From assembly GCF_006345805.1 (NCBI RefSeq), contig NC_043004.1, positions 15,562,001 to 15,626,000 of the forward strand: a stretch of DNA of 64,000 bases, written 5' to 3'. The notes below the pieces were generated by a model, which was given only the letters and a program-made list of their open reading frames with translations, made no database searches and was not told where the DNA came from. Below, in pieces: positions 5,325 through 57,074 of the stretch. Within the stretch, counting starts at the first letter, position 1. Each line of letters opens with the position of its first letter. The position numbers and the translations under genes were made by a program. The DNA comes from Octopus sinensis. Taxonomy: Eukaryota.

Positions 5325-5517
5325 TGCCCGAAACTTTTGAGGAGGTGGGTAGAAATTTAGATCGACCCCAGTACGCAACTGGTACTTAATTTATCGAACT
5401 GAAACGATGAAAGGCAAAGTCGACCTCGGCGGAATTTAAACTCATAACGTAAAGACAGATGAAATGCCGCTAAGCATTTCGCTCGGCATGCTAACGTTTC
5501 TACCAGTACACCACCTT
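5325..5517 (-). mobile_element. tRNA-derived SINE, family A (GTCGACTTTGCCTTTCATCC...GTCGATAAA core)
   Basis: A/B-box-like head plus a core shared with many copies in the window. Confidence 0.85.
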
Positions 5518-9536: not shown

Positions 9537-9580
9537 TATATACATGTATATGTATATATATATGTATATATATGTACGTA

Positions 9581-9611
<31 letters not shown>

Positions 9612-9790
9612 GTGTGTGTGTGTCTTTGAGCCTGTGTTTGTCCCAACCTCACACCGTTTGACAATAGGGGGTTGATGTGTTTGCGTCCCGTAACTTAAAC
9701 GGTGCGGCAAACGAACCTATAGAATAAGCACCAGACTTAATAAAGAAGTACTGGGGTCGATTCTTTTATTTGTTGGACTAAAATGTCATG
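9301..9790 (+). mobile_element. tRNA-derived CORE-like SINE, family B, with internal microsatellite
   Basis: GCTGTGTGGTAA...GCACCTTGGGCAAGTGTCTTCTAC head; internal (TA)n/(TG)n; 3' half matches other copies. Confidence 0.8.
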
Positions 9791-12401
9791 GTTATACCCC
9801 AACAGGAATCACCTTAATCATTGAAATAAATAAAAGATAAAAGATAAGAGAACGGTAGTTTCTGATTTTTGTGCAATTATCCCACATAAAATACACGGGA
9901 AGATCATAAAATACATGGGAATGAGCTACTAAAACCGGTTCAAGTAAAACAATGGTTTGTTTACTTTATTTACGAAAGTTCTCCTGAAATTGTATGAAAT
10001 ATGTAATACATTAAACATAACTGTAAATATGGAAATAGGAAATCAAATTTTAAGATTTATCCAAGCAGGAATGGAAGTATTTACTTTGAATGACGACAAC
10101 ATTAACTGTGAATGTTAAAAGTCGGTAATCTACCACTTTTAAATACATGATTTACATGACAGAATAGAAAGCAATAACAGAAATATGAATTTGTTGTTGC
10201 TATTTATATTCCATACTGTCAGTAAAAAATTATTCATTTCTTTAATAATATATATATCGTTACCTTATATTTACATTAAATATGTTTTTTCTTTTACCTA
10301 CGTCTGGTTAGTCACAATGTCGTGACTAATTCCTGACTCAATGAAAGATATTTAGAACTAATATCTATGATAATAGAAAACATGAATTCTTCAGCAAAGT
10401 GCCTAGTTTATATTTTTACTTCTGAAGATAGACATGTGTCATGAAAGTTATATAAATGCCGAGCAGGTGAAACAAATCTGAGCCAATTCATGATATTTCA
10501 ATAGACATAACAATTATGTGGCGTTTATTCTATGTTTGTATTGTTAGGAATCGCTATGAAATATTTACCGATTTTCACAAGTTTTGCAGTGTTATACATG
10601 AATATAAAAGTTTGTAACACTTTCTGTATTCTACCTTGTGATTCTTAACAAAATGTTCAGCTATATCGCATTTTCCACCATCATTCGGGTTATAGAATCT
10701 GTTATTTTGAATTTTGTTCTTTGTCAAAGCATTGTGTTGAGTGAAATGTTTTCCAATATTCCCGTAACTTATTTGCTTTATTCGCCAAGTTATAAAAATA
10801 AAACGCAGTCTAGCAGTCAAAGTAGGGGCCAACGGGGTGCAATATATGAACCCTCCTTTCTGCTAGTTCTTCGATCCCCTGCTGATACTAGTTCTTTTAC
10901 TTCGATGCGAAGAACTCCACTGAATAATTCACCTACTTTTGGCTGATGAAGTGTTGTGTGTCTAATTGTATAGATGCACTTATTTATTTGTATGTATGTA
11001 TGTACGCGGCTATTGCAGTGCTTTCTGTGCATTAGTGCTTCAAATTCCTTGATGATAGATACCCCTGGACTGCACTTGCGGTGAAGCAAACATTATCTTC
11101 GAGCTGGACTTCTCCCTACCTATAAAGACACTTCCTTCATCGAGATTCCGGCTGTCACCACATCTAGAACACCTAAAAACTTTATTTCTCATCATACCAC
11201 TTGGATAGAACATACCAAAATAACAATGGATCCGACTTTCTGACAGTATGTTGATGTACGTCTATGTTCTGGCTGGTTGGAAGATGAAAACGTTTAAGTA
11301 ATATACGATGAGTTTGAACGACCTTTTGCCGAGAATTTCAAAGTTCTTTCCGCCAGTATGTATTTGTATCAGTCTTGTTTATTTGGAATTTGGCTTAAAC
11401 GTTCTTTGCTTGTTTCTGTTGCAACAACTGGGCGCATCACATTTATAGAGAAGAAAGCGAAACGGAGAAATGCAATTCCGAATACAATGGAAGATTTAAC
11501 GTAAATTCTAGATTTTGGATCCCTTAGAAATCTGGGACAAAAATGAAAATTCCGACAACGGGTGTAGTATGAATGTACTAATCATCAGTGGTATACAGGA
11601 GCGGTCACTGGCAATGGAGTATGTGTAGGAGCTGGTTATGGCAGGTCACTAAACGACTAAACTTCTATCTTGATACCTCGCAGAAGCTTCTAGAACTGTT
11701 GATGTAAATATTGCCTTCGAATAGAAAATCGTGCATATGACGCAAACGAACATAAAAGTCGTAAAAGCATAGACAGCATGCCCCAAAACTTATCTCCTGA
11801 AAATTCTGACAATACTTGATGTTAGACACTGGAGAAATCGAGTTTAACATCGAACTTCTTTCCAGTATTTTGAGAAACTACACTATACATATTGTTGCGC
11901 TCATTGGGACAAGAATACTATTTTTTTTTAAACGATGTAGGCTAGAAAAGTTAGAATGAGAAAGTATACCTCCAACATATGACGAACATCCTGCATTCTA
12001 ATTTCAATGGCTGAGACGAAGTTTAAAATTAATAAACTTAATTGTAATTCTTCTTGCACGATTTCTTTAGACCTGCGTACTAAAACAATCATGTGACATT
12101 CAAATTATTATATACTTAATAACTGAATTTCCGCCTAATTGTTGGAGTTGGACACATCTCTACTGGGATGCATAAAGAAAACCCGCGAATGAGTGATCGA
12201 AAACCATAACGATGAGTGAAATAAGACAACTGCAACAAGCTTTTTCGTCTGTATAAGGAGCAACACTCATTAGTACAAGCACCATCGTCAAGCTTAAAAT
12301 ACTTCCCACAGATGAATCTCAAATATAAACACCGCCATCTTACAAACAACTTCTTGGTCAAGAGGGAAACGTTCAAAAATATTCGGTAGCAGAGTGACTG
12401 A

Positions 12402-12469
12402 GTATCTGATATGCATACATATGATATTAACATTGGTATCTGATATGCATACATATGATATTAACATTG
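12402..12469. repeat. Perfect 34-bp tandem duplication
   Basis: GTATCTGATATGCATACATATGATATTAACATTG x2. Confidence 0.97.
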
Positions 12470-12666
12470 GCACAAATAAAGCAATTTAAGGGAGAGGGTA
12501 AGTTGATGACACCGACCACAGTGCTCGCCAGGTACTTATTTTAACAACCCTGTAAAGGTGAAAGGCAATGTCCACCTCGGCGGAAATTCAATTCAGAAAG
12601 TAAAATCAAACAAAATGCCGCTAAGCATTTTACCCGGTGTTCTAACGATTCTACCAGCTCTCCGCT
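12469..12666 (-). mobile_element. SINE family A, diverged
   Basis: Same head and core. Confidence 0.75.
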
Positions 12667-13600
12667 CTGAAGCATGATATCTATATTAATAACTATTAGA
12701 TGAAACTGTGCTTAAAATGACTCTCAGAATATCCATAGGCCACGAGGCTTGCATACTGCAAAACTCGACTTCCCGCTATTAATTAAGAATTTCTTTATAA
12801 TTTAGTTGTCATTCAGGATGCCTTGTATCACTCGAAAGATGGATCGCCTCACAAATGATTTTCCAACATTATGCAGCAGCTTGTGAGGGAGTGAGATTCA
12901 CAATAAAGAAGTCATATGGAACTCGCGAAGTCAGAAATCTAGAGAAATCGGAATATTCTTCAATGGTATGTAAGATGCCCACAGAGAACCAGTGCATACC
13001 CATGATCTAAACCTCTACATATTTTTGGCGTATTCCTTAAAGTGAGATTCACTTCAGTATGTTTACACTACGAATGTTTATTCACAGAACTTAAGAAATC
13101 CATACGCATGGTGATACACGCAATTATTATGATGCAGTAAAGACACACTTTTTGTCCAGTAATCTTTCTGGACAAATATATGTTCGATGAAAACCCTTTT
13201 GAATTGTTGAAGCCGCTACTGTTTAAAATAAATTAAAGCTTTAAAAATGTATAAATAATCCTTTTGGCCGGACGGTATGAATATCAGAAAATATCACAAC
13301 TGGACACGGGAAGAGCTGATGGTTGATATAATTTTTAACAGGCATATTCATCGCAAATGCTTGGGCCAACATCAAAATCTGTTTGTTGCATTTGTGAAAC
13401 AAACAAGTACAGTTCTCTGTGTAAACAGGGAAATTCTATGCAGTGATATTAGGCACTTTGCTTGTCCCTGTAAATTGAAGTTACGATAGCAACAATTCCA
13501 CATAAGTACATGCACTCAAAATGTCGTTGAAGAACAGAAATTTTGGTTCATCAGAGCCAAAACAGGTTAGGCACGCTGTGCGCCCTTTTCTATGCTGTTG

Positions 13601-14034: not shown

Positions 14035-14644
14035 TTTAGTACCATCTTATTTGATATATTTTTTCTCTAAAACTCAGGATTAACTATAAATCTTGGATGT
14101 AACGGGCACTTTTTCATTATCAAGGTGCTATCATAACCAAGCTGAAATTTAAACAATTTGTCGTGTTTAAATATTTTTTTGAAGAGTAATATCACTTTGC
14201 TTATATAAATGGTCATAGAGGCAAAACATTTTTAGCCTTTATATGGATATAGTATCAGTGATAGAACATTATGGCAAATATCTGCAAAATATCAACAAAA
14301 TAGTTGTTTAGAAAAGGATTATACAAGAATTGTATAAACTAAAACACTGCCAAATACATCCACTAGTAAAATAATAAAACAACAACATCTACAAAGACTT
14401 AATCGATATAAAATTAATGTAATCTGGACAGAAAAGCTCTTGGGAAAATTGCTATTCAGAACTCAGTAAAATGTTCTTAGCTTAATTATGTTTTGATCTC
14501 ATTAAAGAAACAATATACAAAATATTCATATGACGTTAAATTCCGGAAGGATGCCAAACAAAAATGGACAACGAGAAAATAATTAATTTCATGATTTCAT
14601 CTTATTCAAAATTAAATTAACGCAATAAATTATGTCTCAAAATT

Positions 14645-14646
14645 GA

Positions 14647-14711
<65 letters not shown>

Positions 14712-14720
14712 TATTATTAC
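14645..14720. repeat. (TTA)n microsatellite
   Basis: Directly visible. Confidence 0.95.
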
Positions 14721-15205
14721 TTTGTAAACGACGCTGAAAGTGTGAAAGGTGCAAATATTTGTCGAGATCCTCTAGAGAATGTGATAAGCGTAGTAAATTA
14801 TTTGGTTCGATCAAAGAGAGTAATTATAGCATATCATCTAAAAAAATTAACTTAGCCAACATTATCTACGAAATATTTAGCCAACTACAATAGTCATGAA
14901 CTAGCTGTTATTGAATAGGTGCTGAAACTCATCATATAGGCAGTGTTAAAACGAATACCTACTTGACAAGTTCTTGTTTACAAATGTGTTATTGGGATGT
15001 GATAGCACGAATCCAGATCAGAACTAGAGTCGACTATGCAACTGGTCTATCCATAAGTTTTTCATAAATAATGGATGCATTTAAATAATGACATGTTTTG
15101 GTTTAATTGGCCGCATAGAGATAAATATGCATACATGCATACACATACATACGTATATATAGATATCTGTGTTGCGTCTCTCTCACTATATATATATATA
15201 TATGT

Positions 15206-15694
15206 TCATGTAAATACGTGTCTGTCACAAAGAGTTTTGAAATACCGCACGTGGTAGTTTTTGCTAATTATGACCCTGATACAAGTAAAATGAGTGCCGA
15301 TAGATGGGACATCCGTCCGATAACACCGGCAGATAATACAATGATTTTTAAAGAAATACTGGAGGAATTTCTTGATAATGAGATTAATAATGAAGATATG
15401 CGTCCGTTAAAAGAATGGGTTTTCGGAAGCTCCGACACCGACATAATAGACGAGATGTTTGACAGATCAGAATGTGAACTGGAGATGGAGAAAGTTAATA
15501 AAAGAAAGAGATACAATTCACCTGTTCCTTTAAATAGACATGATGCAATTGATGGAAACATTTCTTTCTTTTGCAATAACAATGTGGAGAAGTGTAACTG
15601 TCAATTTGTAAGAAGAGAGAATGAGATGTTAATGGAAAAAATAAAAATGTTGAATGAAAAACTTGACAAATACGAGGAAGTTGATTCTGAATAA
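15206..15694 (+). CDS. rep: Endogenous CRESS-DNA-virus-like Rep fragment (C-terminal SF3 helicase) with an acidic/coiled-coil C-terminal extension; 5'-truncated
   Basis: In-frame read [39 protein letters not shown] fits the SxKY (motif B'), hhhFAN (motif C) and DRW (arginine finger) pattern of CRESS Reps. The frame is open to TAA at 15692-15694. Flanked by (TA)n on both sides. HUH endonuclease and Walker A/B motifs are absent. Confidence 0.75.
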
Positions 15695-15706
15695 AAGTTT
15701 TATTCA
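15688..15706. terminator. Palindromic bidirectional polyadenylation signal
   Basis: TGAATAAAA-G-TTTTATTCA is a perfect 9-bp inverted repeat carrying AATAAA on both strands and overlapping the Rep-like stop codon. Confidence 0.5.
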
Positions 15707-15763
15707 ATTTAATTACATGAGTTTGTTTTTATTGCATGTTTTCTTCCTTCTGCACGTTTTATG

Positions 15764-15802
<39 letters not shown>

Positions 15803-15930
15803 AACATGTATATGTTAAATAAAATGAGACAACAAAGTCAAGGTTGTGTGGAATTCTTATTTCCATCCTTTTCCAAAATAACACCTTATATTTAACTCTA
15901 CTATTTCCCTCTATTCACCCATCTCACATC

Positions 15931-15978: not shown

Positions 15979-16640
15979 TAACCTTCTCCCGAAAATTCCA
16001 CACAATCTTGGCTTTTATGTATCATTTTGTTTAACACACATACACACATACACACAGACACACAAATACATAGATAGATACGCACATACATACATGCATG
16101 TTATCCGAGGGCCGTTCGACGCTCTAACCACTAAGCCATTCGTCTTCACTATATTTATGCATAATACATAGATATATATGTCTATATTAGCTTCATATGC
16201 TTCAATTCCCTAAGAGAATATATGTGCTCATGTTTTCTGTGTGAGTGTTCCTAGTACGTAATTCCTGAAAGCAATCTTAATATTGTAAATATAGGGCCAT
16301 ACGTCAGGCTATGTATGATATAATTCTAAAAATTAGCATGTAGATTTCCCCTATTCTAATTTGTTTAAGCCGTCTCCTATAGTTGCTTGGAGCATAAAAG
16401 CACACACACAAGTCGGTAGCAGAATAGAATTGTCTGTCATGGGTACCAGGCTTCCCATGCCGTGATTTGATTCTTCTGGAAGTGTCCAGTCACCGTATGA
16501 GAGTCATTTTGCAGCTACCATATATAGAATACCAGCATGTTTTCAGGCATTGGTGTTGCAAATAGACTGTAGGCTTATAAAAACAATTAATTATTAGAGA
16601 CGAAAGCAGGAAGCGGTATTAATACCATCATGTAGTCTTT

Positions 16641-17228
16641 CTTATTTCTTTATTGCCGACAAACAAAGAGGGGACAAACAAAGACAGACAAAGGCATTAA
16701 GTCGATTACATCGATCCCAGTACGTAACTGCTACTTAATTTATCGACTCCGAAAGGATGAAAGACAAAGTCGACCTCGGTGGAATTTGAACTCAGAACAT
16801 ACGAAATACCGCTAAGCATTTCGCCCGGCAAAAGAAATACCTATTTCTTTACTACCCACAAGGGGCGAAGCACAGAAAGGACAAACAAGGACAGACAAAG
16901 GGATTAAGTCGATTATATCGACTCCAGTGTGTAACTGATACTTAATTTATCGACCCCGAAAGGATGAAAGGCAAAGTCGACCTCGGTGGAATTTCATCTC
17001 AGAACGTAGCGGCAAACAAAATGCCTATTTATTTACTACCCACAAGGGGCTAAATACAGAGAGGACAAACAAGGACAGACAAACGGATTAAATCGATTAT
17101 ATCGACCCCGGTGAGTAACTGGTACTTATTTAATCGACCCCGAAAGGATGAAAAGCGGAAATTGAACTCAGAACGTAAACACCGATAAGCCTTTTGCCAG
17201 GCGTGCTAATGTTTCTGCCAGTTGGCCC
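16641..17228 (-). mobile_element. Tandem trimer of SINE family A
   Basis: Three ~190-200-bp core+tail units, head to tail. Confidence 0.85.
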
Positions 17229-17936
17229 CCTTTTTTTTTTGTAGCCTTTTTGTCCAGCTTAACATGAATGTCTTGTTATGAATGTCGGAATGTTGCTTAA
17301 TTAGCCTTGAGAGATCATTTCGTATAAGCGCTTGGTGCGTTGAAACAAGCACATTGATCGTAGCATAAGAGAATTGTCTATCATGGGACCGGAATTCCCA
17401 TATAACGTTATTTCATTCTACTGCAAATCATCAGTGCAAGGAGTCCGGTAACCGCATTCCAGTCAAATTTCGCTATTACGGTATATAGAATATTAGTACC
17501 TTCTCAAAAACTGATGTCGCAAATAGTCGTATTAAAAATTAATTACCAGTTTCTAGTATAATGAAATAACGTTTAGTGGAATTTGTGGCACCATCCCAGA
17601 CGGCTCTCGTCTAATTCTGTCTATGCGTGGGTCTTTTACACCAAGCATATATATATGAGATCTCTCAGGGCAGCAATTTATGTTAAAAAGACATCCATGT
17701 TAAGCTGGATATAAACATTACATTGTCGTATAAACAGTGTTACCGTCGCTAATAATTAATTGTCCAATATACATGGAAATTTTTAGCCAAGAACTGTGGA
17801 GAATTATGCAGACACACAAACATTCATCTACATATGTAAGTTTATGTCATTGTATTGTTGAATTATATATGAAAATAAATTAGCTCTAAAATGTGTGATG
17901 ACTCAATTCTCTTTAATAGAGTATATATTCATTAGT

Positions 17937-18164
17937 GGAGGCGCATGGCTTAGTGTTTAGAGTGTCAGCAACATGATCGTAAGATTGTGGTTTCGACCCC
18001 TGACCGGGCTGCGCGTTGTGTTCTTGAGCAAAACACTTCATTTCACGTTGCCCAGCTGGCAAGAATGAGTAATGCTGCGATGGACTGGCGTCCCGTCCAG
18101 CTGGGGAACACATACGCCATTGAAACCGGGCCCATGAGCCTGGCTAGGCTTTCAACGGGAGCAT
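17937..18164 (+). mobile_element. tRNA-derived SINE, family C head with V-domain-like body
   Basis: GGAGGCGCATGGCTTAGTG...GTGTTCTTGAGCAAAACACTT then TGCGATGGACTGGCGTCCCGTCCAG. Confidence 0.85.
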
Positions 18165-23513: not shown

Positions 23514-25879
23514 TTCTTCATTGCATATACTGGAAACTTATCGCTAATTTTCATATATAGTAATCTTTCTAAATTCTAAAAGTAATTATCAACATGATTC
23601 TCTTGTATTGGAATGGGATGTTTCTGAACGGAACATTCGGTAATAAGGCCCTATTTAAAATACCTTTGAGGAATTTAAAATGCCTTTCAAATGTTGCTAA
23701 AATGATCGAGAGATCAAGACATAATGGGTTTTCATTAAAACTGTTTTAAAAGCTATCAATTCCTTACACATTAGATTCGCTTTTATGAGGTATAAATTTC
23801 TAAATATTCATGCATTCTAGCAATTCTAGTTGAAATTTTATAAATTATATAAAATCAGAACACAAATAGCCATTAATCTGAAGTAAACATCATATCATAG
23901 ATGAAAATTTTGGTGAGGAGCGAAAAGGATGGAGAACCATAGAAGATGTAGCAGTTGTGCCTTATGCAATAAGGCGAATTTGAGGAGGAATTAAGTTCGA
24001 ATGAAAATTAGGTAAAATATTAGTTTCGAAAAAATATTGAACAAATTGTGACTGTATTTTGAAGATGTACAATGATGTCTGAAAAAGTTCACAAGTTCTA
24101 AATAGAAATATTGTTTCCACCAAAAGAAAATAAGTAAACGGCAGCAGACTTTTGGAAGCTTATGTTTTTCAGAGAAAACTAATCCAGTTTTCTTTTTCTT
24201 TTATTTCAACTAAGAATCAGTTACGTACTGCTTTGGGTATCGAGTAACATGTTACTTTAATATCATTTCTTTGTCTGGCTTTCTTTGAGAAATGTGTGTA
24301 AGGTGGTTAACTTCACTAAAACCGTTACTTTGAATTGACTTCAAAAATGAACGGCTTAGAGTAGTTAGCACACGAAAGACAACTAACAATAGTAGCGAAC
24401 TTCAAACTTCAAAGTCAACAAATTTCTTATGACTACAAAGAGTAAAATTGTGAATAAATACCACAAAATCTAAATATATTCATCAAATAATAAGAGTATA
24501 GCATTAACTAGATATTCGATACTGAGTTTATGATGTTTAGAAGGTATCCGCTTGCTTTATGCAGCGACTACAAAAAATATGTTCAAGTCGTCTGCCAGGA
24601 AACGAATTGCTACTACTGATCCTTTACACATATAAATATAGATAAATGTTCATTTATGCACATACGTATATATCGATATCTATACGTATATGTATCTATC
24701 AATATTTCCATTCTATCTATCACTTGATATGTGTATGTGTCTGTGTGTGTGTCTGTGTATTTGTGTGCACGCGTGCATGCGCCGTATATGAGTGAGAGAG
24801 AGAGAGAAAGAATGTATGTCTAAGTGTGCCTGTGTCTAAATATGATGTATTATAGAGAGATATGTACACATGTGCATACATATTTACTTATATGCGTCAA
24901 TATGTGTATGGATGTGTGAATGTGAGTGCTTCAGTACGAAGGAATCGCAGATACATAGAAAGGGAAAGGAAATGAGAGAGCACAGACTTTTTCTCGGTAA
25001 GTCAGTACTTCGTTTATCGCATTTATATTCGGTCAGCAACTGATACCCACAGCAGAGTAATACAATTTGATAATTTACCTTCTTTTTGCTATAATATTTT
25101 GCTTTGCAGTTGTGTAAATTAACACCGCATAAATTCCTATGTGTGCGGCAAATCTCCTAACACCTGTTTACATCGGAATTCTCTGTAGCAATTCGTTATC
25201 AAAATGTTAACATACTCGCGCGTGTATGTTAAAGTTGAACGAAGAGATAACATGAAGTAGATCAATGCCCTGCTGGGTTTCATATTTTAGAATTTTACGT
25301 AGATTATACTTCACAATGTTGCATTAGTGAAATGATTTCATAACCTTCCTGTAAATACATGGATTATATTTCTCACTCCTTTGTATGTACCGTAAAAGAT
25401 ACCCTGCTTCCCCAGTAGAGCAATTACCATATGTCTCGGGAAGTAAAACGGCATTAAAGTATAGCACTCCATTTATATTCGTTGAGAGGAAATTGATTCT
25501 GTGTCGATTTACCTTCAGATCACGTATTTTACATTACCTCCTATTTATTGAAACTGAAGATGCAGGATAATTATGAATAGTTATTGAAACGACGCCAGTC
25601 TTATTGACAACTTAATTGTATAGATCTATTTCAGAAGTGACCGTTGGATTTAACGTTTACCCAAGTAATTAAAGCAAACCAAGATACAATAATTTGACTT
25701 TCTTTGGCTGGGAAATGGAATTATCTACACACAACGATTTCTCTTGCATTCAAAAATCCATTCAATTTGTAGATTTAAAAATATATTATTTGGGTGGAAC
25801 CGTCAACTATTATTAATGTGGTGTGTGAAAATAATTCACAATATTGGCTAAAAGTTCGATTTATTGTAAAAGGAACTAT

Positions 25880-27574: not shown

Positions 27575-27730
27575 ATGCACATATCATCAGACTCTAAGGG
27601 ATATGATCAACTGGTTAAGGGCAAACAACTGACAAGGAAATCTATGGTATTGAGCAGAATATATGCTATAGCCCATCATTTACGAAGACAAATCAATGTA
27701 TATGATAACACTTCCAGTCAGTGAAGATAA
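27575..27730 (-). mobile_element. Diverged family E copy
   Basis: Reverse complement of family E (CAACTGGTTAAGG.CAAACAACTGACAAG.AAATCT.TGGTATTGAGCAGAATAT); same orientation as the adjacent R4/Dong copies. Confidence 0.75.
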
Positions 27731-27806
27731 TCTTCCATCCAGAGATGATGTGGTTCACTGTTTCTACCACATCATTATCATCATTATAATTATCATTATT
27801 ATTATT

Positions 27807-28183
27807 CAGTAGTTTTATTTTTATAACGTGTTTTCACTTCACTACCGAGCGCAGCTGTATGTGCCTTGGGTATGTACTGTGATTTGTTGTGATGCTCTGA
27901 TGGTTACTGTATTGAAAGTGCTCTGCGTAGGATGTGTGCAGTACCTAGTAGTGCAATTTTCTGTATGTTATATGTGTTTGTAAGTCCTGGTGTTTTTGTT
28001 ATGTATTTGTCTGAATATTTCTTTATCATGTCTAATGTACCTACTATGATAGGAATTGTTTCTGCTTTTAGATTCCACATTCTAGTTACCTCTATTTCCA
28101 GGTATTTGTATTTTGAAAGTTTCTCCACTTCTTTTAGAGACAAGTTGTTATCTGCTGGTATTGATACATCAATTAAAAAGCAT
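27807..28183 (-). mobile_element. Second 377-bp 3' fragment of the same R4/Dong family
   Basis: Same endpoints and near-identical sequence to 28256-28632; bounded by (AAT)n-type repeats. Confidence 0.93.
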
Positions 28184-28218
28184 TATTATTATTATTATTA
28201 TTAATATTATTATTATTA

Positions 28219-28783: not shown

Positions 28784-31104
28784 TAGTTTTATTTTTATAG
28801 CGTGCTTTCACTTCACTACCGAGCGCAGCTCTGTGTGCCTTAGGTATGTGCTGTGATTTGTTGTGATGCTCTGATGGTTATTGTATGGAAAGTGTTCTGC
28901 GTAGGATGTGTGCAGCGCCTAGTAGTGCAATTTTCTGTATGTTATATGTGTTTGTAAGTCCTGGTGTTTTTGATATGTATTTGTCTGAATTTTTTTTTAT
29001 CATGCCTAATGCACCTACTATGATAGGAATTGTTTCTGTTTTCAGATTCCACATTCTAGTTACCTCTATTTCCAGGTCTTTGAATTTTGAGAGTTTCTCC
29101 ATTTCTTTTAGAGACACGTTGTCATCTGCCGGTATTGATACATCAATTAGAAAGCATTTTTTTTCTTCATCATCACTGACAACTATATCTGGTCTGTTGG
29201 CCTTAATTTCTCTATCTGTGTGTATCGGCATATCCCAGAGTATGGTTGCTTTCTCGTTTTCTGTGACCTTTTCTGGTGTGTGCCTATACCATCTTTTTTC
29301 TGTTGTTATTCCATAATGTTGGCATAGCTTCCAATGTATGTAGGTTCCAACTCTGTCATGTCTGTGAATATATTCCTTCTTAGCCAGGACTGGGCAGCCA
29401 GAGGTAATATGATTTATTGTTTCTTGTCCATCTCCACATATTCTGCAGTTACTTGTAATATTTCTTTTCATTACATGTTTTTGGTAATTTCTGGTGGGGA
29501 GGCTTTGGTCTTGTGCTGCAATTAAAAATCCCTCTGTTTCTGCTTTGAGTCCTGAGCTTCTCAACCATTGCTCGGATTTTTCTTTGTCTATTTCTTTTGC
29601 GTTTAGTTTAGTCCAGTATTTACCATGAAGGGGCTTTTCTTGCCATCGTTTTATCATGGTTCGTTGCTGTTCTATTTTTAGTTTGGATTTCATTTTTTTT
29701 ATAGCTTTTGTTGTTTCTTCATCTTCTTCTTCTTCTTCATGTTTATTAGGTGGTATGATTTCTTGTTTGTATTTGTCAGCTTCCTTAAATACTGAGAACA
29801 GTTTTTTGTTTTGCTCGTGTTTTGCCGCTATCTGGATCAGTTTTCCTTCCTTCTGAAGTAGATATTTTTGCAGTCCTATGGTGGTTATTTTATAGTAGTT
29901 TTCCAGCTGTATAAGGCCTCTACCACCTTCTATACGTTGTATATATAGTCTATCTATGTCAGCTTTTGGGTGATGCATCCTAGATCCTGTCATTAGTTTT
30001 CTTATTTTCCTATCTATTTTGGTCAGTTCATTTCGTGTCCAGTTAAGGATATTGTAGCTGTAACTTAAAACTGGGACAGCTAAAGTGTTGATACCTATTA
30101 TCTTGTTATTAGCATTGAGCTCTGTATTTAGTATTGATCTAACTCGTCTATAATATTCTTTTTTATTTTCTCTTTCATTTGTGTGTGTTGTGTCTTATCT
30201 AGTTCATGGATTCCTAAGTATTTGTAAGTTTGGCTTTGGTCTAATTCTTTTATTTCATTGGTTTTATCTAGTGTGATGTTGTTACTCTTAACTAGTTTTC
30301 CTCTTTTCATGGTTACTTTGGCGCATTTTCTAATCCAAATTTCATATCTATTTCTTTGGTAAATCCATGAACTGTCTTTAATAGTGTTTCCAGCTGTTTG
30401 TCATTTGCAGCGTATAGTTTTAGGTCATCCATATATAAAAGGTGGCTGATCGTTTTGCCGTAACATTTATATCCGCATCCAGTTCTATTTAGCATATCAG
30501 ATAGAGGTGACAGTGCCAAGCAGAAAAGGAGTGGAGAGAGCGTGTCTCCTTGGAATATTCCTTTTCTAATGAGGATGTCTTTGGTTTTCATGAGTCCCTC
30601 TTTTGTTTGGAGGTGTAGGACTGTTTGCCATTTATTCTTAGAGTGCTCTATGAATTTTATGATTGTTGGTGCTACTTTGTTAATGGCTAGTGTTTCGAGG
30701 ATCCATGTGTGGGGGATGCTATCAAACGCCTTTTTGTAGTCAATCCAGGCCATACTGAGGCCTTTCTTCTTTCTGTGGCTGTCTTCAGTTATGGCTTTAT
30801 TAATCATTAGTTGATCTTTACAGCCATATGAGCCTTTGCGGCATCCTTTCTGCTCTTCTGGGAACAGTTTGTTTTCGTCCAGGTGCTTGTTCAGCCTTTG
30901 TGATATCACTGCAATAAATGCCTTGAACATAGTAGGGAGGCAGGTTATTGGTCTGTAGTTTTCTGGTTTTTCTGTTTCATTTGATTTGGGAATTAAGATG
31001 GTTTTCCCCTTCGTGAGCCATTCAGGCATTGTCTCTGGCTCTGCTAGTACGTTGTTAAAGTTTTCAGCCAGCTTTTTGTGCATTCCTGTTAGATATTTCA
31101 ACCA
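28781..31104 (-). mobile_element. R4/Dong-clade non-LTR retrotransposon (RT + CCHC + restriction-like endonuclease), 5'-truncated, young
   Basis: RT motifs NYRPITCL, IDYKKAFDS, GIFQGDTLSP, YMDD; zinc knuckle CRICGDGQETINHITSGC; YIHRHD; RLE RPDIVV...LIDVSIP. The ~100-bp 3' UTR runs into (AAT)n. Only two 1-nt frameshifts, both in A-runs. Confidence 0.95.
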
Positions 31105-31223
31105 ATAATAATAATAATAATAATAATTATTATTATTATTATTATTATCATTATTATTATTAATTGTTGCTGTTGTTATTATCATCATTTTACATGTACA
31201 CGCATATACACACATACACACAC

Positions 31224-31515
31224 GAGTGAAGTTGCGTGGCTTAATGGTTAGCGATATTCGGTCAGGAGTTCAATTACCACTGAAGCGTAATGTTCTTGAG
31301 GAAACATTTTATTTTATGCTGCTTCAGTTCACTCAGCTGGTAAGAACGAGTTGAACCCTGTTTTAAAAGGCCAGCTTTGTCACATTGTGTGCCACGCTGA
31401 ATCTTTCTGAGAACTACCTTAAGTGCACATATGTCTGGGGAAGGCTCAGTCACGTGCACGTCAATTCCACCAGCTGGTTGTTCCCTCAATCGCTTCAACT
31501 GGGCCCGCCGTTGTC
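31224..31515 (+). mobile_element. SINE family C, diverged
   Basis: Homologous to 37031-37351 along its length. Confidence 0.75.
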
Positions 31516-55695: not shown

Positions 55696-57074
55696 AACTT
55701 CTGGTTGAAATATCTAACAGGAATGCACAAAAAGCTGGCTGAAAACTTTACAACGTACTAGCAGAGCCAGAGACAATGCCTGAATGGCTCACGAAGGGGA
55801 AAACCATCTTAATTCCCAAATCAAATGAAACAGAAAAACCAGAAAACTACAGACCAATAACCTGCCTCCCTACTATGTTCAAGGCATTTACTGCAGTGAT
55901 ATCACAAAGGCTGAACAAGCACCTGGACGAAACAAACTGTTCCCAGAAGAACAGAAAGGATGCCGCCAAGGCTCATATGGCTGTAAAGATCAACTAATGA
56001 TTATAAAGCCATAACTGAAGACAGCCACAGAAAGAAAAGGCCTCAGTATGGCCTGGATTGACTACAAAAAGGCGTTTGATAGCATCCCCCACACATGGAT
56101 CCTCGAAACACTAGCCATTAACAAAGTAGCACCAACAATCATAAAATTCATAGAGCACTCTATGAATAAATGGCAAACAGTCCTACACCTCCAAACAAAA
56201 GAGGACTCATGAAAACCAAAGACATTCCCCTTAGAAGAGGAATATTCCAGGGAGATACGCTCTCTCCACTCCTTTTCTGCTTGGCACTGTCACCTCTATC
56301 TGATATGCTAAATAGAACTGGATGCGGATATAAATGTTAGGGCAAAACGATCAGCCACCTTTTATATATGGATGACCTAAAACTATACGCTGCAAATGAC
56401 AAACAGCTGGAAACACTATTAAAGACAGTTCATGGATTTATCAAAGAAATAGATATGAAATTTGGATTAGAAAAATGCGCCAAAGTAACCATGAAAAGAG
56501 GAAAACTAGTTAAGAGTAACAACATCACACTAGATGAAGCAAATGAAATAAAAGAATTAGACCAAAGCCAAACTTACAAATACTTAGGAATCCATGAACT
56601 AGATAAGACACAACACACACAAATGAAAGAGAAAATAAAAAAAGAATATTATAGACGAGTTAGTTCAATACTAAACACAGAGCTCAATGCTAAAAACAAG
56701 ATAATAGGTATCAACACTTTAGCTGTCCCAACGTGCTCTAAAAGAAATGGAGAAACTCTCAAAATACAAAGACCTGGAAATAGAGGTAACTAGAATGTGG
56801 AATCTGAAAACAGAAACAATTCCTATCATAGTAGGTGCATTAGGCATGATAAAAAAATATTCAGACAAATACATAACAAAAACACCAGGACTTACAAACA
56901 CATATAACATACAGAAAATTGCACTACTAGGCACTGCACACATCCTACGCAGAACACTTTCCATACAATAACCATCAGAGCATCACAACAAATCACAGCA
57001 CATACCCAAGGCACACAGAGCTGCGCTCGGTAGTGAAGTGAAAGCACGCTATAAAAATAAAAATAAAACTATTG
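55696..57074 (+). mobile_element. R4/Dong family copy, 5'-truncated with a ~950-bp internal deletion
   Basis: Near-identical to 28781-31104 (MPEWLTKGKTILIPK, YMDDLKLY, same 3' UTR). Jumps from ...GCTGTCCCA directly to ACGTG(T)CTCTAAAAGAAATG at ~56730. Confidence 0.93.

Follow-up and report, generated by a model that had tools for sequence, protein, structure and literature searches.

The window, by which is meant the whole 64-kb stretch of DNA analysed, contains on its plus strand a segment of 565 bases, set between two (TA)n microsatellites, that is probably the 3' part of the rep gene of a CRESS-DNA virus. The features of the locus, with the evidence for each, are the following.

15186-15203, no strand: left (TA)9 microsatellite, which abuts or slightly overlaps the boundary of the 5' truncation (read from the sequence, and repeat families D4/D5).
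15199-15763, plus strand: the whole virus-derived segment, 565 bases, with the 3' part of rep and about 70 nt of 3' non-coding DNA (blastn against the O. vulgaris copy L001).
15206-15340, plus strand: C-terminal end of the SF3 helicase, ORF residues 1-45 (blastp relatives, alignment, and the model of the O. vulgaris protein P0001).
15341-15694, plus strand: lineage-specific C-terminal tail of Rep, ORF residues 46-162, and the TAA stop codon (blastp of the relatives, identity to the contig L004, and the P0001 model).
15690-15695, plus strand: AATAAA hexamer overlapping the stop codon (read from the sequence; at the same place in O. vulgaris L001).
15695-15763, plus strand: 3' non-coding part of the viral segment (DNA alignment with L001 up to the common TCTGCACGTTTTATG block, and blastn).
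15765-15795, no strand: right (TA)15 microsatellite, directly 3' of the viral segment (Tandem Repeats Finder, and read from the sequence).

The reading frame runs for 162 codons without a stop (15206-15691, plus strand) and is closed by TAA at 15692-15694. Upstream it extends through microsatellite DNA, giving an open stretch of 189 codons in all (15125-15691, plus strand); two retrotransposon ORFs are the only longer ones in the window. For the local base composition, a run of 162 codons without a stop has a probability of about 6e-6 per start. The 162-codon frame has no internal stops and no frameshifts, and the only length differences from the paralogues are a few in-frame ones of one codon each. 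The homologous part of the ORF begins without an ATG. An earlier description, made from the sequence only, of a stop-free frame of about 160 codons between two (TA)n tracts was accurate; the opening peptide quoted there was verified by translation from 15206 on the plus strand, and the end coordinate given there, 15760, agrees with the point, at about 15763, where homology to the O. vulgaris copy stops. The AATAAA hexamer may be the polyadenylation signal of rep transcripts in the virus.

The 162-residue fragment alone gave nothing significant against Pfam, PHROGs, NCBIfam or PDB sequences. The best matches in the direct scans, BCAS2 (E 0.017) and an O-methyltransferase (E 0.053), were taken as chance, and a scan of IMG/VR with the ORF found no close relative. 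An exhaustive phmmer search with the ORF over 1.84 billion representatives gave 226 matches at E <= 1e-3. The top match is P0001, a 266-residue 'hypothetical predicted protein' of O. vulgaris, which is 83% identical over the whole ORF (E 1e-78). The weaker matches are restricted to ORF residues 1 to about 45 and lie at the C-terminal ends of proteins mostly of 270-450 residues; those sampled carry an N-terminal Viral_Rep (PF02407) or Gemini_AL1 (PF00799) domain followed in mid-protein by RNA_helicase (PF00910). A named match is the Crucivirus-474 Rep (P0011, QMW68933.1). A search with P0001 gave 104 relatives, most of them with PF02407 and on contigs of 1-3 kb, among which the names 'replication associated protein [Cressdnaviricota sp.]' and 'Para-Rep C1 [Lamellibrachia satsuma]' were found. 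A profile built from 50 members of the family reaches E 1e-25 against Reps of solved structure (7lar/7las and others), the matching region being the HUH part; the P0001 sequence alone found nothing among PDB sequences.

The AlphaFold model of P0001 has a pLDDT above 90 for residues 11-150. Its top fold matches in the PDB are SF3 helicases (papillomavirus E1, AAV Rep40, SV40 large T and vientovirus Rep), and in BFVD its matches are CRESS Reps, at E values reaching 9e-19 and with an rmsd of 1-2 A over about 140 residues. The SF3 helicase fold is accordingly present in this paralogue by model, PDB and BFVD, and it was on the paralogue and not on the fragment that the fold was tested. The Pfam domains of the relatives, their names, the profile match to Rep structures and the fold matches of P0001 together support the placing of the window fragment, by way of its relatives, in the Rep family of CRESS viruses, phylum Cressdnaviricota. 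The sequence-only reading had named the locus a candidate CRESS Rep fragment, and both the domains of the phmmer relatives and the presence of diverged paralogues in two Octopus species bear this out.

The first 45 residues of the ORF are the part held in common with other Reps and are matched by 248 of the 259 relatives fetched (blastp). Four columns are invariant in the 50-sequence Rep alignment, namely K106, N124, S133 and R136 of P0001, which are K3, N21, S30 and R33 in the window. A further six are near-invariant (Y107, P117, H118, P127, D135 and W137 of P0001; Y4, P14, H15, P24, D32 and W34 in the window), and all ten conserved columns within the fragment are kept. The KY, FAN and DRW motifs pointed out from the sequence at the outset all fall in these columns. 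The PF00910 match of P0001 stops at residue 124, which is window residue 21; by what is established for SF3 helicases, this residue is the Asn of motif C and R33 occupies the arginine-finger position. The P0001 model has strands at 110-113, 118-123 and 137-141, all with a pLDDT above 90. Judged by this model, the core of the window fragment consists of the three final strands of the helicase fold, together with the motif C Asn and the arginine finger.

In CRESS Reps an N-terminal HUH endonuclease nicks the origin and a hexameric SF3 helicase unwinds the DNA. Most of this is missing from the window. With P0001 as query only residues 102-266 were matched (tblastn), so that residues 1-101, which hold Walker A and B, have no counterpart in the window. 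The full-length Rep P0165 was matched in residues 275-315 only, and the HUH domain is absent from the whole 64-kb window by tblastn with full-length relatives; it is present in the relatives themselves and, in a second frame, in the O. vulgaris locus L003. The absence of HUH and Walker A/B means that the gene is 5'-truncated and unable to encode a working Rep, and this truncation is the only break in the rep gene of the window. Because only the last three helicase strands and the lineage-specific tail remain, the fragment, on what its sequence retains, would be unable to bind ATP, to nick or to unwind, and it is most likely an inert relic.

The tail, about 117 residues long (ORF residues 46-162), consists of an acidic stretch, a Cys-containing block (FFCNNN..KCNC) and a long terminal helix. 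In the P0001 model the middle of the tail has low confidence and a C-terminal helix, residues 237-265, is confident. The tail alone matches eight of the 259 fetched proteins, all of them in the octopus group (blastp). Since the Rep-like frame of L004 is 74.5% identical to the window over the whole ORF, tail included, the tail is part of the viral gene and not host sequence. One further match to this region, P0003 (1491 residues, DUF7507 repeats), which aligns with the acidic part (ORF residues 38-85) in 11 stretches at E 5e-19, was judged a compositional or repeat artefact.

Compared with known CRESS Reps (7lar/7las and, in BFVD, those of Cressdnaviricota sp., Circoviridae sp., Cruciviridae sp. 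and the Banana bunchy top virus M-Rep), window residues 1-45 align with the end of the SF3 domain, the paralogue P0001 has the same helicase fold and the family profile matches the solved HUH domains. The window differs from them in having neither HUH nor Walker A/B, and in its 117-residue tail, which has no detectable counterpart outside the octopus group. The Crucivirus-474 Rep is 48% identical to the window over the first 56 residues, and 'Para-Rep C1' of the tubeworm Lamellibrachia satsuma (P0161, KAI0212790.1) shares 60% identity with the helicase half of P0001; neither has the tail. The named neighbours of the Rep are mixed, and the alignable core in the window is about 45 residues. Neither of the two names classifies the octopus lineage.

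The same Rep lineage, tail included, is found at other loci in octopus genomes. The amino acid identity to the window ORF is 83% for P0001, 83% for the O. bimaculoides protein XP_014788809.1 (A0A0L8I7L6) and 42% for P0160. P0001 is encoded by L001, on O. vulgaris chromosome OX597824.1, which has helicase and tail. L003, on chromosome OX597828.1, holds a nearly whole Rep in two frames and has therefore at least one frameshift; its product P0160 (CAI9733846.1) carries the UniRef name 'Replication associated protein', so that automatic database names already recognise octopus paralogues as Rep. More copies, some running into microsatellite, are present in the Logan contigs L002 and L005-L007 (runs SRR11869384/391/394). 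The O. vulgaris and O. bimaculoides paralogues keep more of the gene than the window does (Walker A/B, and in L003 also most of HUH in the second frame), lie in unrelated flanks and are saturated at synonymous sites relative to the window. The copies in L001, L003, O. bimaculoides and the Logan contigs L002 and L007 differ in extent and flanks.

L004 (JBFBPM010000001.1) is a contig of 2,467 bp filed under the Erwinia amylovora assembly GCA_044652805.1. Besides a convergent ORF it carries an open Rep-like frame of 453 codons, which includes an HUH part as well as the octopus-type tail and runs off the contig end. Unlike the window segment it lacks surrounding host DNA, and in both size and layout it corresponds to a free CRESS-like genome. 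L004 is almost certainly not bacterial, being either a contaminating CRESS-like genome or other foreign DNA. A convergent ORF is likewise found in L001, where it has 163 codons on the strand opposite to rep; its homologue in L004 is 83% identical, and one in L003, at the same position, is 37% identical (E 1e-37). The arrangement of rep and a convergent ORF in L001, L003 and L004 reads as the ambisense layout usual for CRESS genomes. The convergent ORF has no Pfam match, its structure model, from an alignment of three sequences, has a pLDDT of 31, and no remnant of it or of a Cap-like gene was found in the 64-kb window.

Two observations concern the surroundings of L001. A public gene model on the minus strand (10949-20801 of L001, OX597824.1; 638 residues, 7tm_1) appears to join the convergent ORF (10952-11440) to GPCR exons, and a GPCR-like first exon (9565-10032, minus strand) overlaps, in antisense, the upstream end of the P0001 frame (9911-10020). 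The gene model has the look of a chimeric annotation at a site where viral DNA was inserted into a cluster of GPCR genes. Among the more distant sequences, P0005 (MCK5919361.1, from a 3.9-kb contig of a 'Methylococcales bacterium' MAG) has 354 residues with two tandem Rep-type SF3 helicase domains and no HUH; the contig, binned as bacterial, may be a CRESS-like one in which the helicase has been duplicated, or may have been binned wrongly.

In the assembly as given the virus-derived segment is contiguous with host DNA on both sides. Comparison of the window with 53 kb of O. vulgaris DNA gave 144 interspersed-repeat matches of 70-89% identity, and the fragment is surrounded by microsatellites, SINE-like repeats and LINE fragments common to O. 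vulgaris; on such likeness an octopod origin of the window is well supported. L001 (10304-10857) aligns with the window at about 15199-15763 with 75.7% DNA identity over 577 columns (blastn), and the similarity ends at both (TA)n tracts, the flanks being unrelated (blastn and DNA alignment). The DNA identity of the viral segment is 73.4% to L004 and 73.1% to L007. The window copy showed neither terminal repeats nor flanks in common with other copies, and no second copy of its flanks was found in the window. What would have become lodged in the octopod genome is thus the last 162 or so codons of rep with the stop codon and about 70 nt of non-coding DNA downstream. Entry was probably by non-homologous or microhomology-mediated joining at a break, and a single (TA)n microsatellite is proposed as the site because the same repeat borders both ends.

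The divergence between copies was estimated as pS and pN by Nei-Gojobori counts. The window differs from L001 by a pS of 0.79 and a pN of 0.116 and from L004 by 0.76 and 0.171, and the corresponding values between L001 and L004 are 0.70 and 0.142. Across the copies pS is 0.70-0.92, which is saturated, while pN among the window, L001 and L004 is 0.12-0.17. Saturated pS together with low pN shows that the copies diverged under selection, nearly all of the divergence having accumulated under coding constraint, and rules out an origin of the copies by duplication followed by neutral decay. As extents and flanks vary from copy to copy, separate integrations from viruses that had already diverged are the simplest reading; selection on the host copies is the alternative. 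Several octopus copies with nearly all synonymous sites changed and the amino acids kept would then reflect repeated independent integration and a long association with octopods. The segment at 15199-15763 is regarded, with good but not full confidence, as a 5'-truncated endogenous relic of a CRESS rep gene in an octopod genome, one of several copies that fit repeated independent integration from a diversified lineage.

The intact frame may be best explained by the youth of the insertion. Stops are created by 73 of the 1458 possible substitutions in the window frame, and with no stop present the neutral change accumulated after integration can be at most about 0.12 substitutions per site (95% bound, substitutions only), or about 0.05 if frameshifting indels occur at an assumed rate of about one tenth of that of substitutions. 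The window has 10 unique amino acid states, compared with 4 in P0001, 4 in P0159 (O. bimaculoides) and 16 in L004, and thus shows no sign of accelerated decay.

An undamaged frame without an excess of unique changes is also what is expected from selection on a product expressed by the host. The fragment or its tail could have been adopted by the host and be held open by selection, yielding a small protein or forming one exon of a host gene. The conservation of all the conserved columns would fit such a role, as would the annotation of paralogues as intact proteins in O. vulgaris and O. bimaculoides and the low pN/pS between copies. The last of these is equally explained by divergence in the virus before integration, given the different extents and flanks, and adoption is further opposed by the lack of an ATG at the start of the homologous part, by the microsatellite nature of the frame upstream and by the cut through the middle of the helicase, which according to the model would leave residues 1-45 unable to fold as they do in Rep. 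Host adoption is for these reasons considered unlikely. A young, inert relic is favoured because the helicase fold is cut mid-way and no start or splice signal is evident.

The fragment might instead act as RNA, as a template for small RNAs in a memory of infection of the piRNA type, the open frame being incidental. Such a role has been proposed for viral fossils in other invertebrates. The DNA around the fragment is rich in repeats and transposons, and octopus genomes have retained several such pieces from this virus group, both of which would suit it; an RNA template, however, does not need an open frame, and this explanation is given the same low probability as host adoption.

Still less probable is a source in a non-viral, Rep-bearing mobile element, plasmid-like or transposon-like, that multiplies within octopus genomes. 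The presence of several copies per genome with coding constraint between them might be so explained, as might a neighbouring convergent ORF that lacks a Pfam match and is modelled at low confidence. The nearest relatives, however, are Reps on contigs of 1-3 kb, as is typical of CRESS viruses, and such names as they bear are viral, the combination of rep and convergent ORF on the 2.47-kb contig has the layout of a CRESS virus, and the window copy has no terminal repeats or flanks shared with other copies. The helicase moreover is SF3, unlike the SF1 helicase of Helitrons, whose RepHel protein is an HUH domain fused to a Pif1-like SF1 helicase; an origin from a Helitron, as a transposon-borne rep, was rejected on this helicase class, which is SF3 by Pfam and by fold. 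Least credible of all is that the segment is not integrated and that reads of a free virus or contaminating DNA were joined to the host at (TA)n during assembly: both junctions do lie exactly at low-complexity (TA)n, where assemblers can join falsely, and the related, free-looking L004 is a contaminant in a bacterial assembly, but two false joins around just 565 bp of one gene would be required, related copies lie within chromosome-scale O. vulgaris scaffolds at other sites, and truncated copies that run into microsatellite are found in independent read sets too (including P0002).

Most CRESS-DNA viruses from metagenomes have no known host, and integrated fragments are one of the few direct links between such a virus and a host. 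Through the window fragment and the diverged paralogues present in O. vulgaris and O. bimaculoides, one Rep lineage is tied to octopods, in line with the cephalopod-associated CRESS lineage that had been suggested from the sequence. An inert relic of this kind alters nothing in the understanding of Rep or of viral fossils. Endogenous elements derived from Rep are widespread in eukaryotes, including Aplysia among molluscs (Liu et al. 2011, PMC3198968), and endogenous CRESS Rep elements have been described in Mytilus, Modiolus, Biomphalaria and Conus (Dennis et al. 2018, PMC6069186). Fragments of rep that have coding potential are frequent among endogenous CRESS elements (PMC3198968, PMC6069186). 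The O. bimaculoides assembly v2_0 was screened by Dennis et al. 2018 and does not figure in their list of species with elements (PMC6069186). The window fragment resembles the circovirus-like and other CRESS elements of animals in being a rep-derived fragment within host DNA, the host here being a cephalopod, and a literature search found no paper on CRESS elements in cephalopods. A wider and doubtful, though somewhat less improbable, proposition than any of the alternatives above is that octopods have long been associated with a distinct CRESS lineage that has a unique Rep tail, Cys-containing and coiled-coil, and has integrated repeatedly; L004 might then be a free member of it that is still in circulation, and at least the copy represented by P0001 and XP_014788809.1, with intact helicase and tail, might have been kept by the host to serve a function of the host's own.

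The neighbourhood of the fragment holds several other elements. About 500 nt upstream, at 14647-14719, is a (TAT)24 microsatellite, and the G+C content at 14100-14850 is only 21-28%. Directly 3' of the right (TA)n tract is an inverted repeat (15769-15855 and 15994-16080) with arms of 87 nt, 74% complementary and separated by 138 nt, which has a foldback or MITE-like look and no second copy in the window. A short repeat at 17935-18055 is 80% identical to L001 8398-8520 and has an inverted, partial partner at 16118-16151; no tRNA-like genes were found by ARAGORN, either there or elsewhere in the window. A repeat unit of about 150-200 nt occurs in three tandem-like copies at 16619-17231 and also at 5326-5512 and 12463-12704. 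Its family is abundant in L003 on both sides of the Rep element (about 23949-24792 and 27712-28212), and the unit probably represents a SINE or satellite that is very common in octopus. Further away, non-LTR retrotransposon ORFs of 438 and 318 codons with zf-RVT and RVT_1 matches lie at 28881-31269 on the minus strand, and a second RVT_1 fragment of the same family, with a peptide stretch in common with that copy, lies at 56341-56790 on the plus strand.
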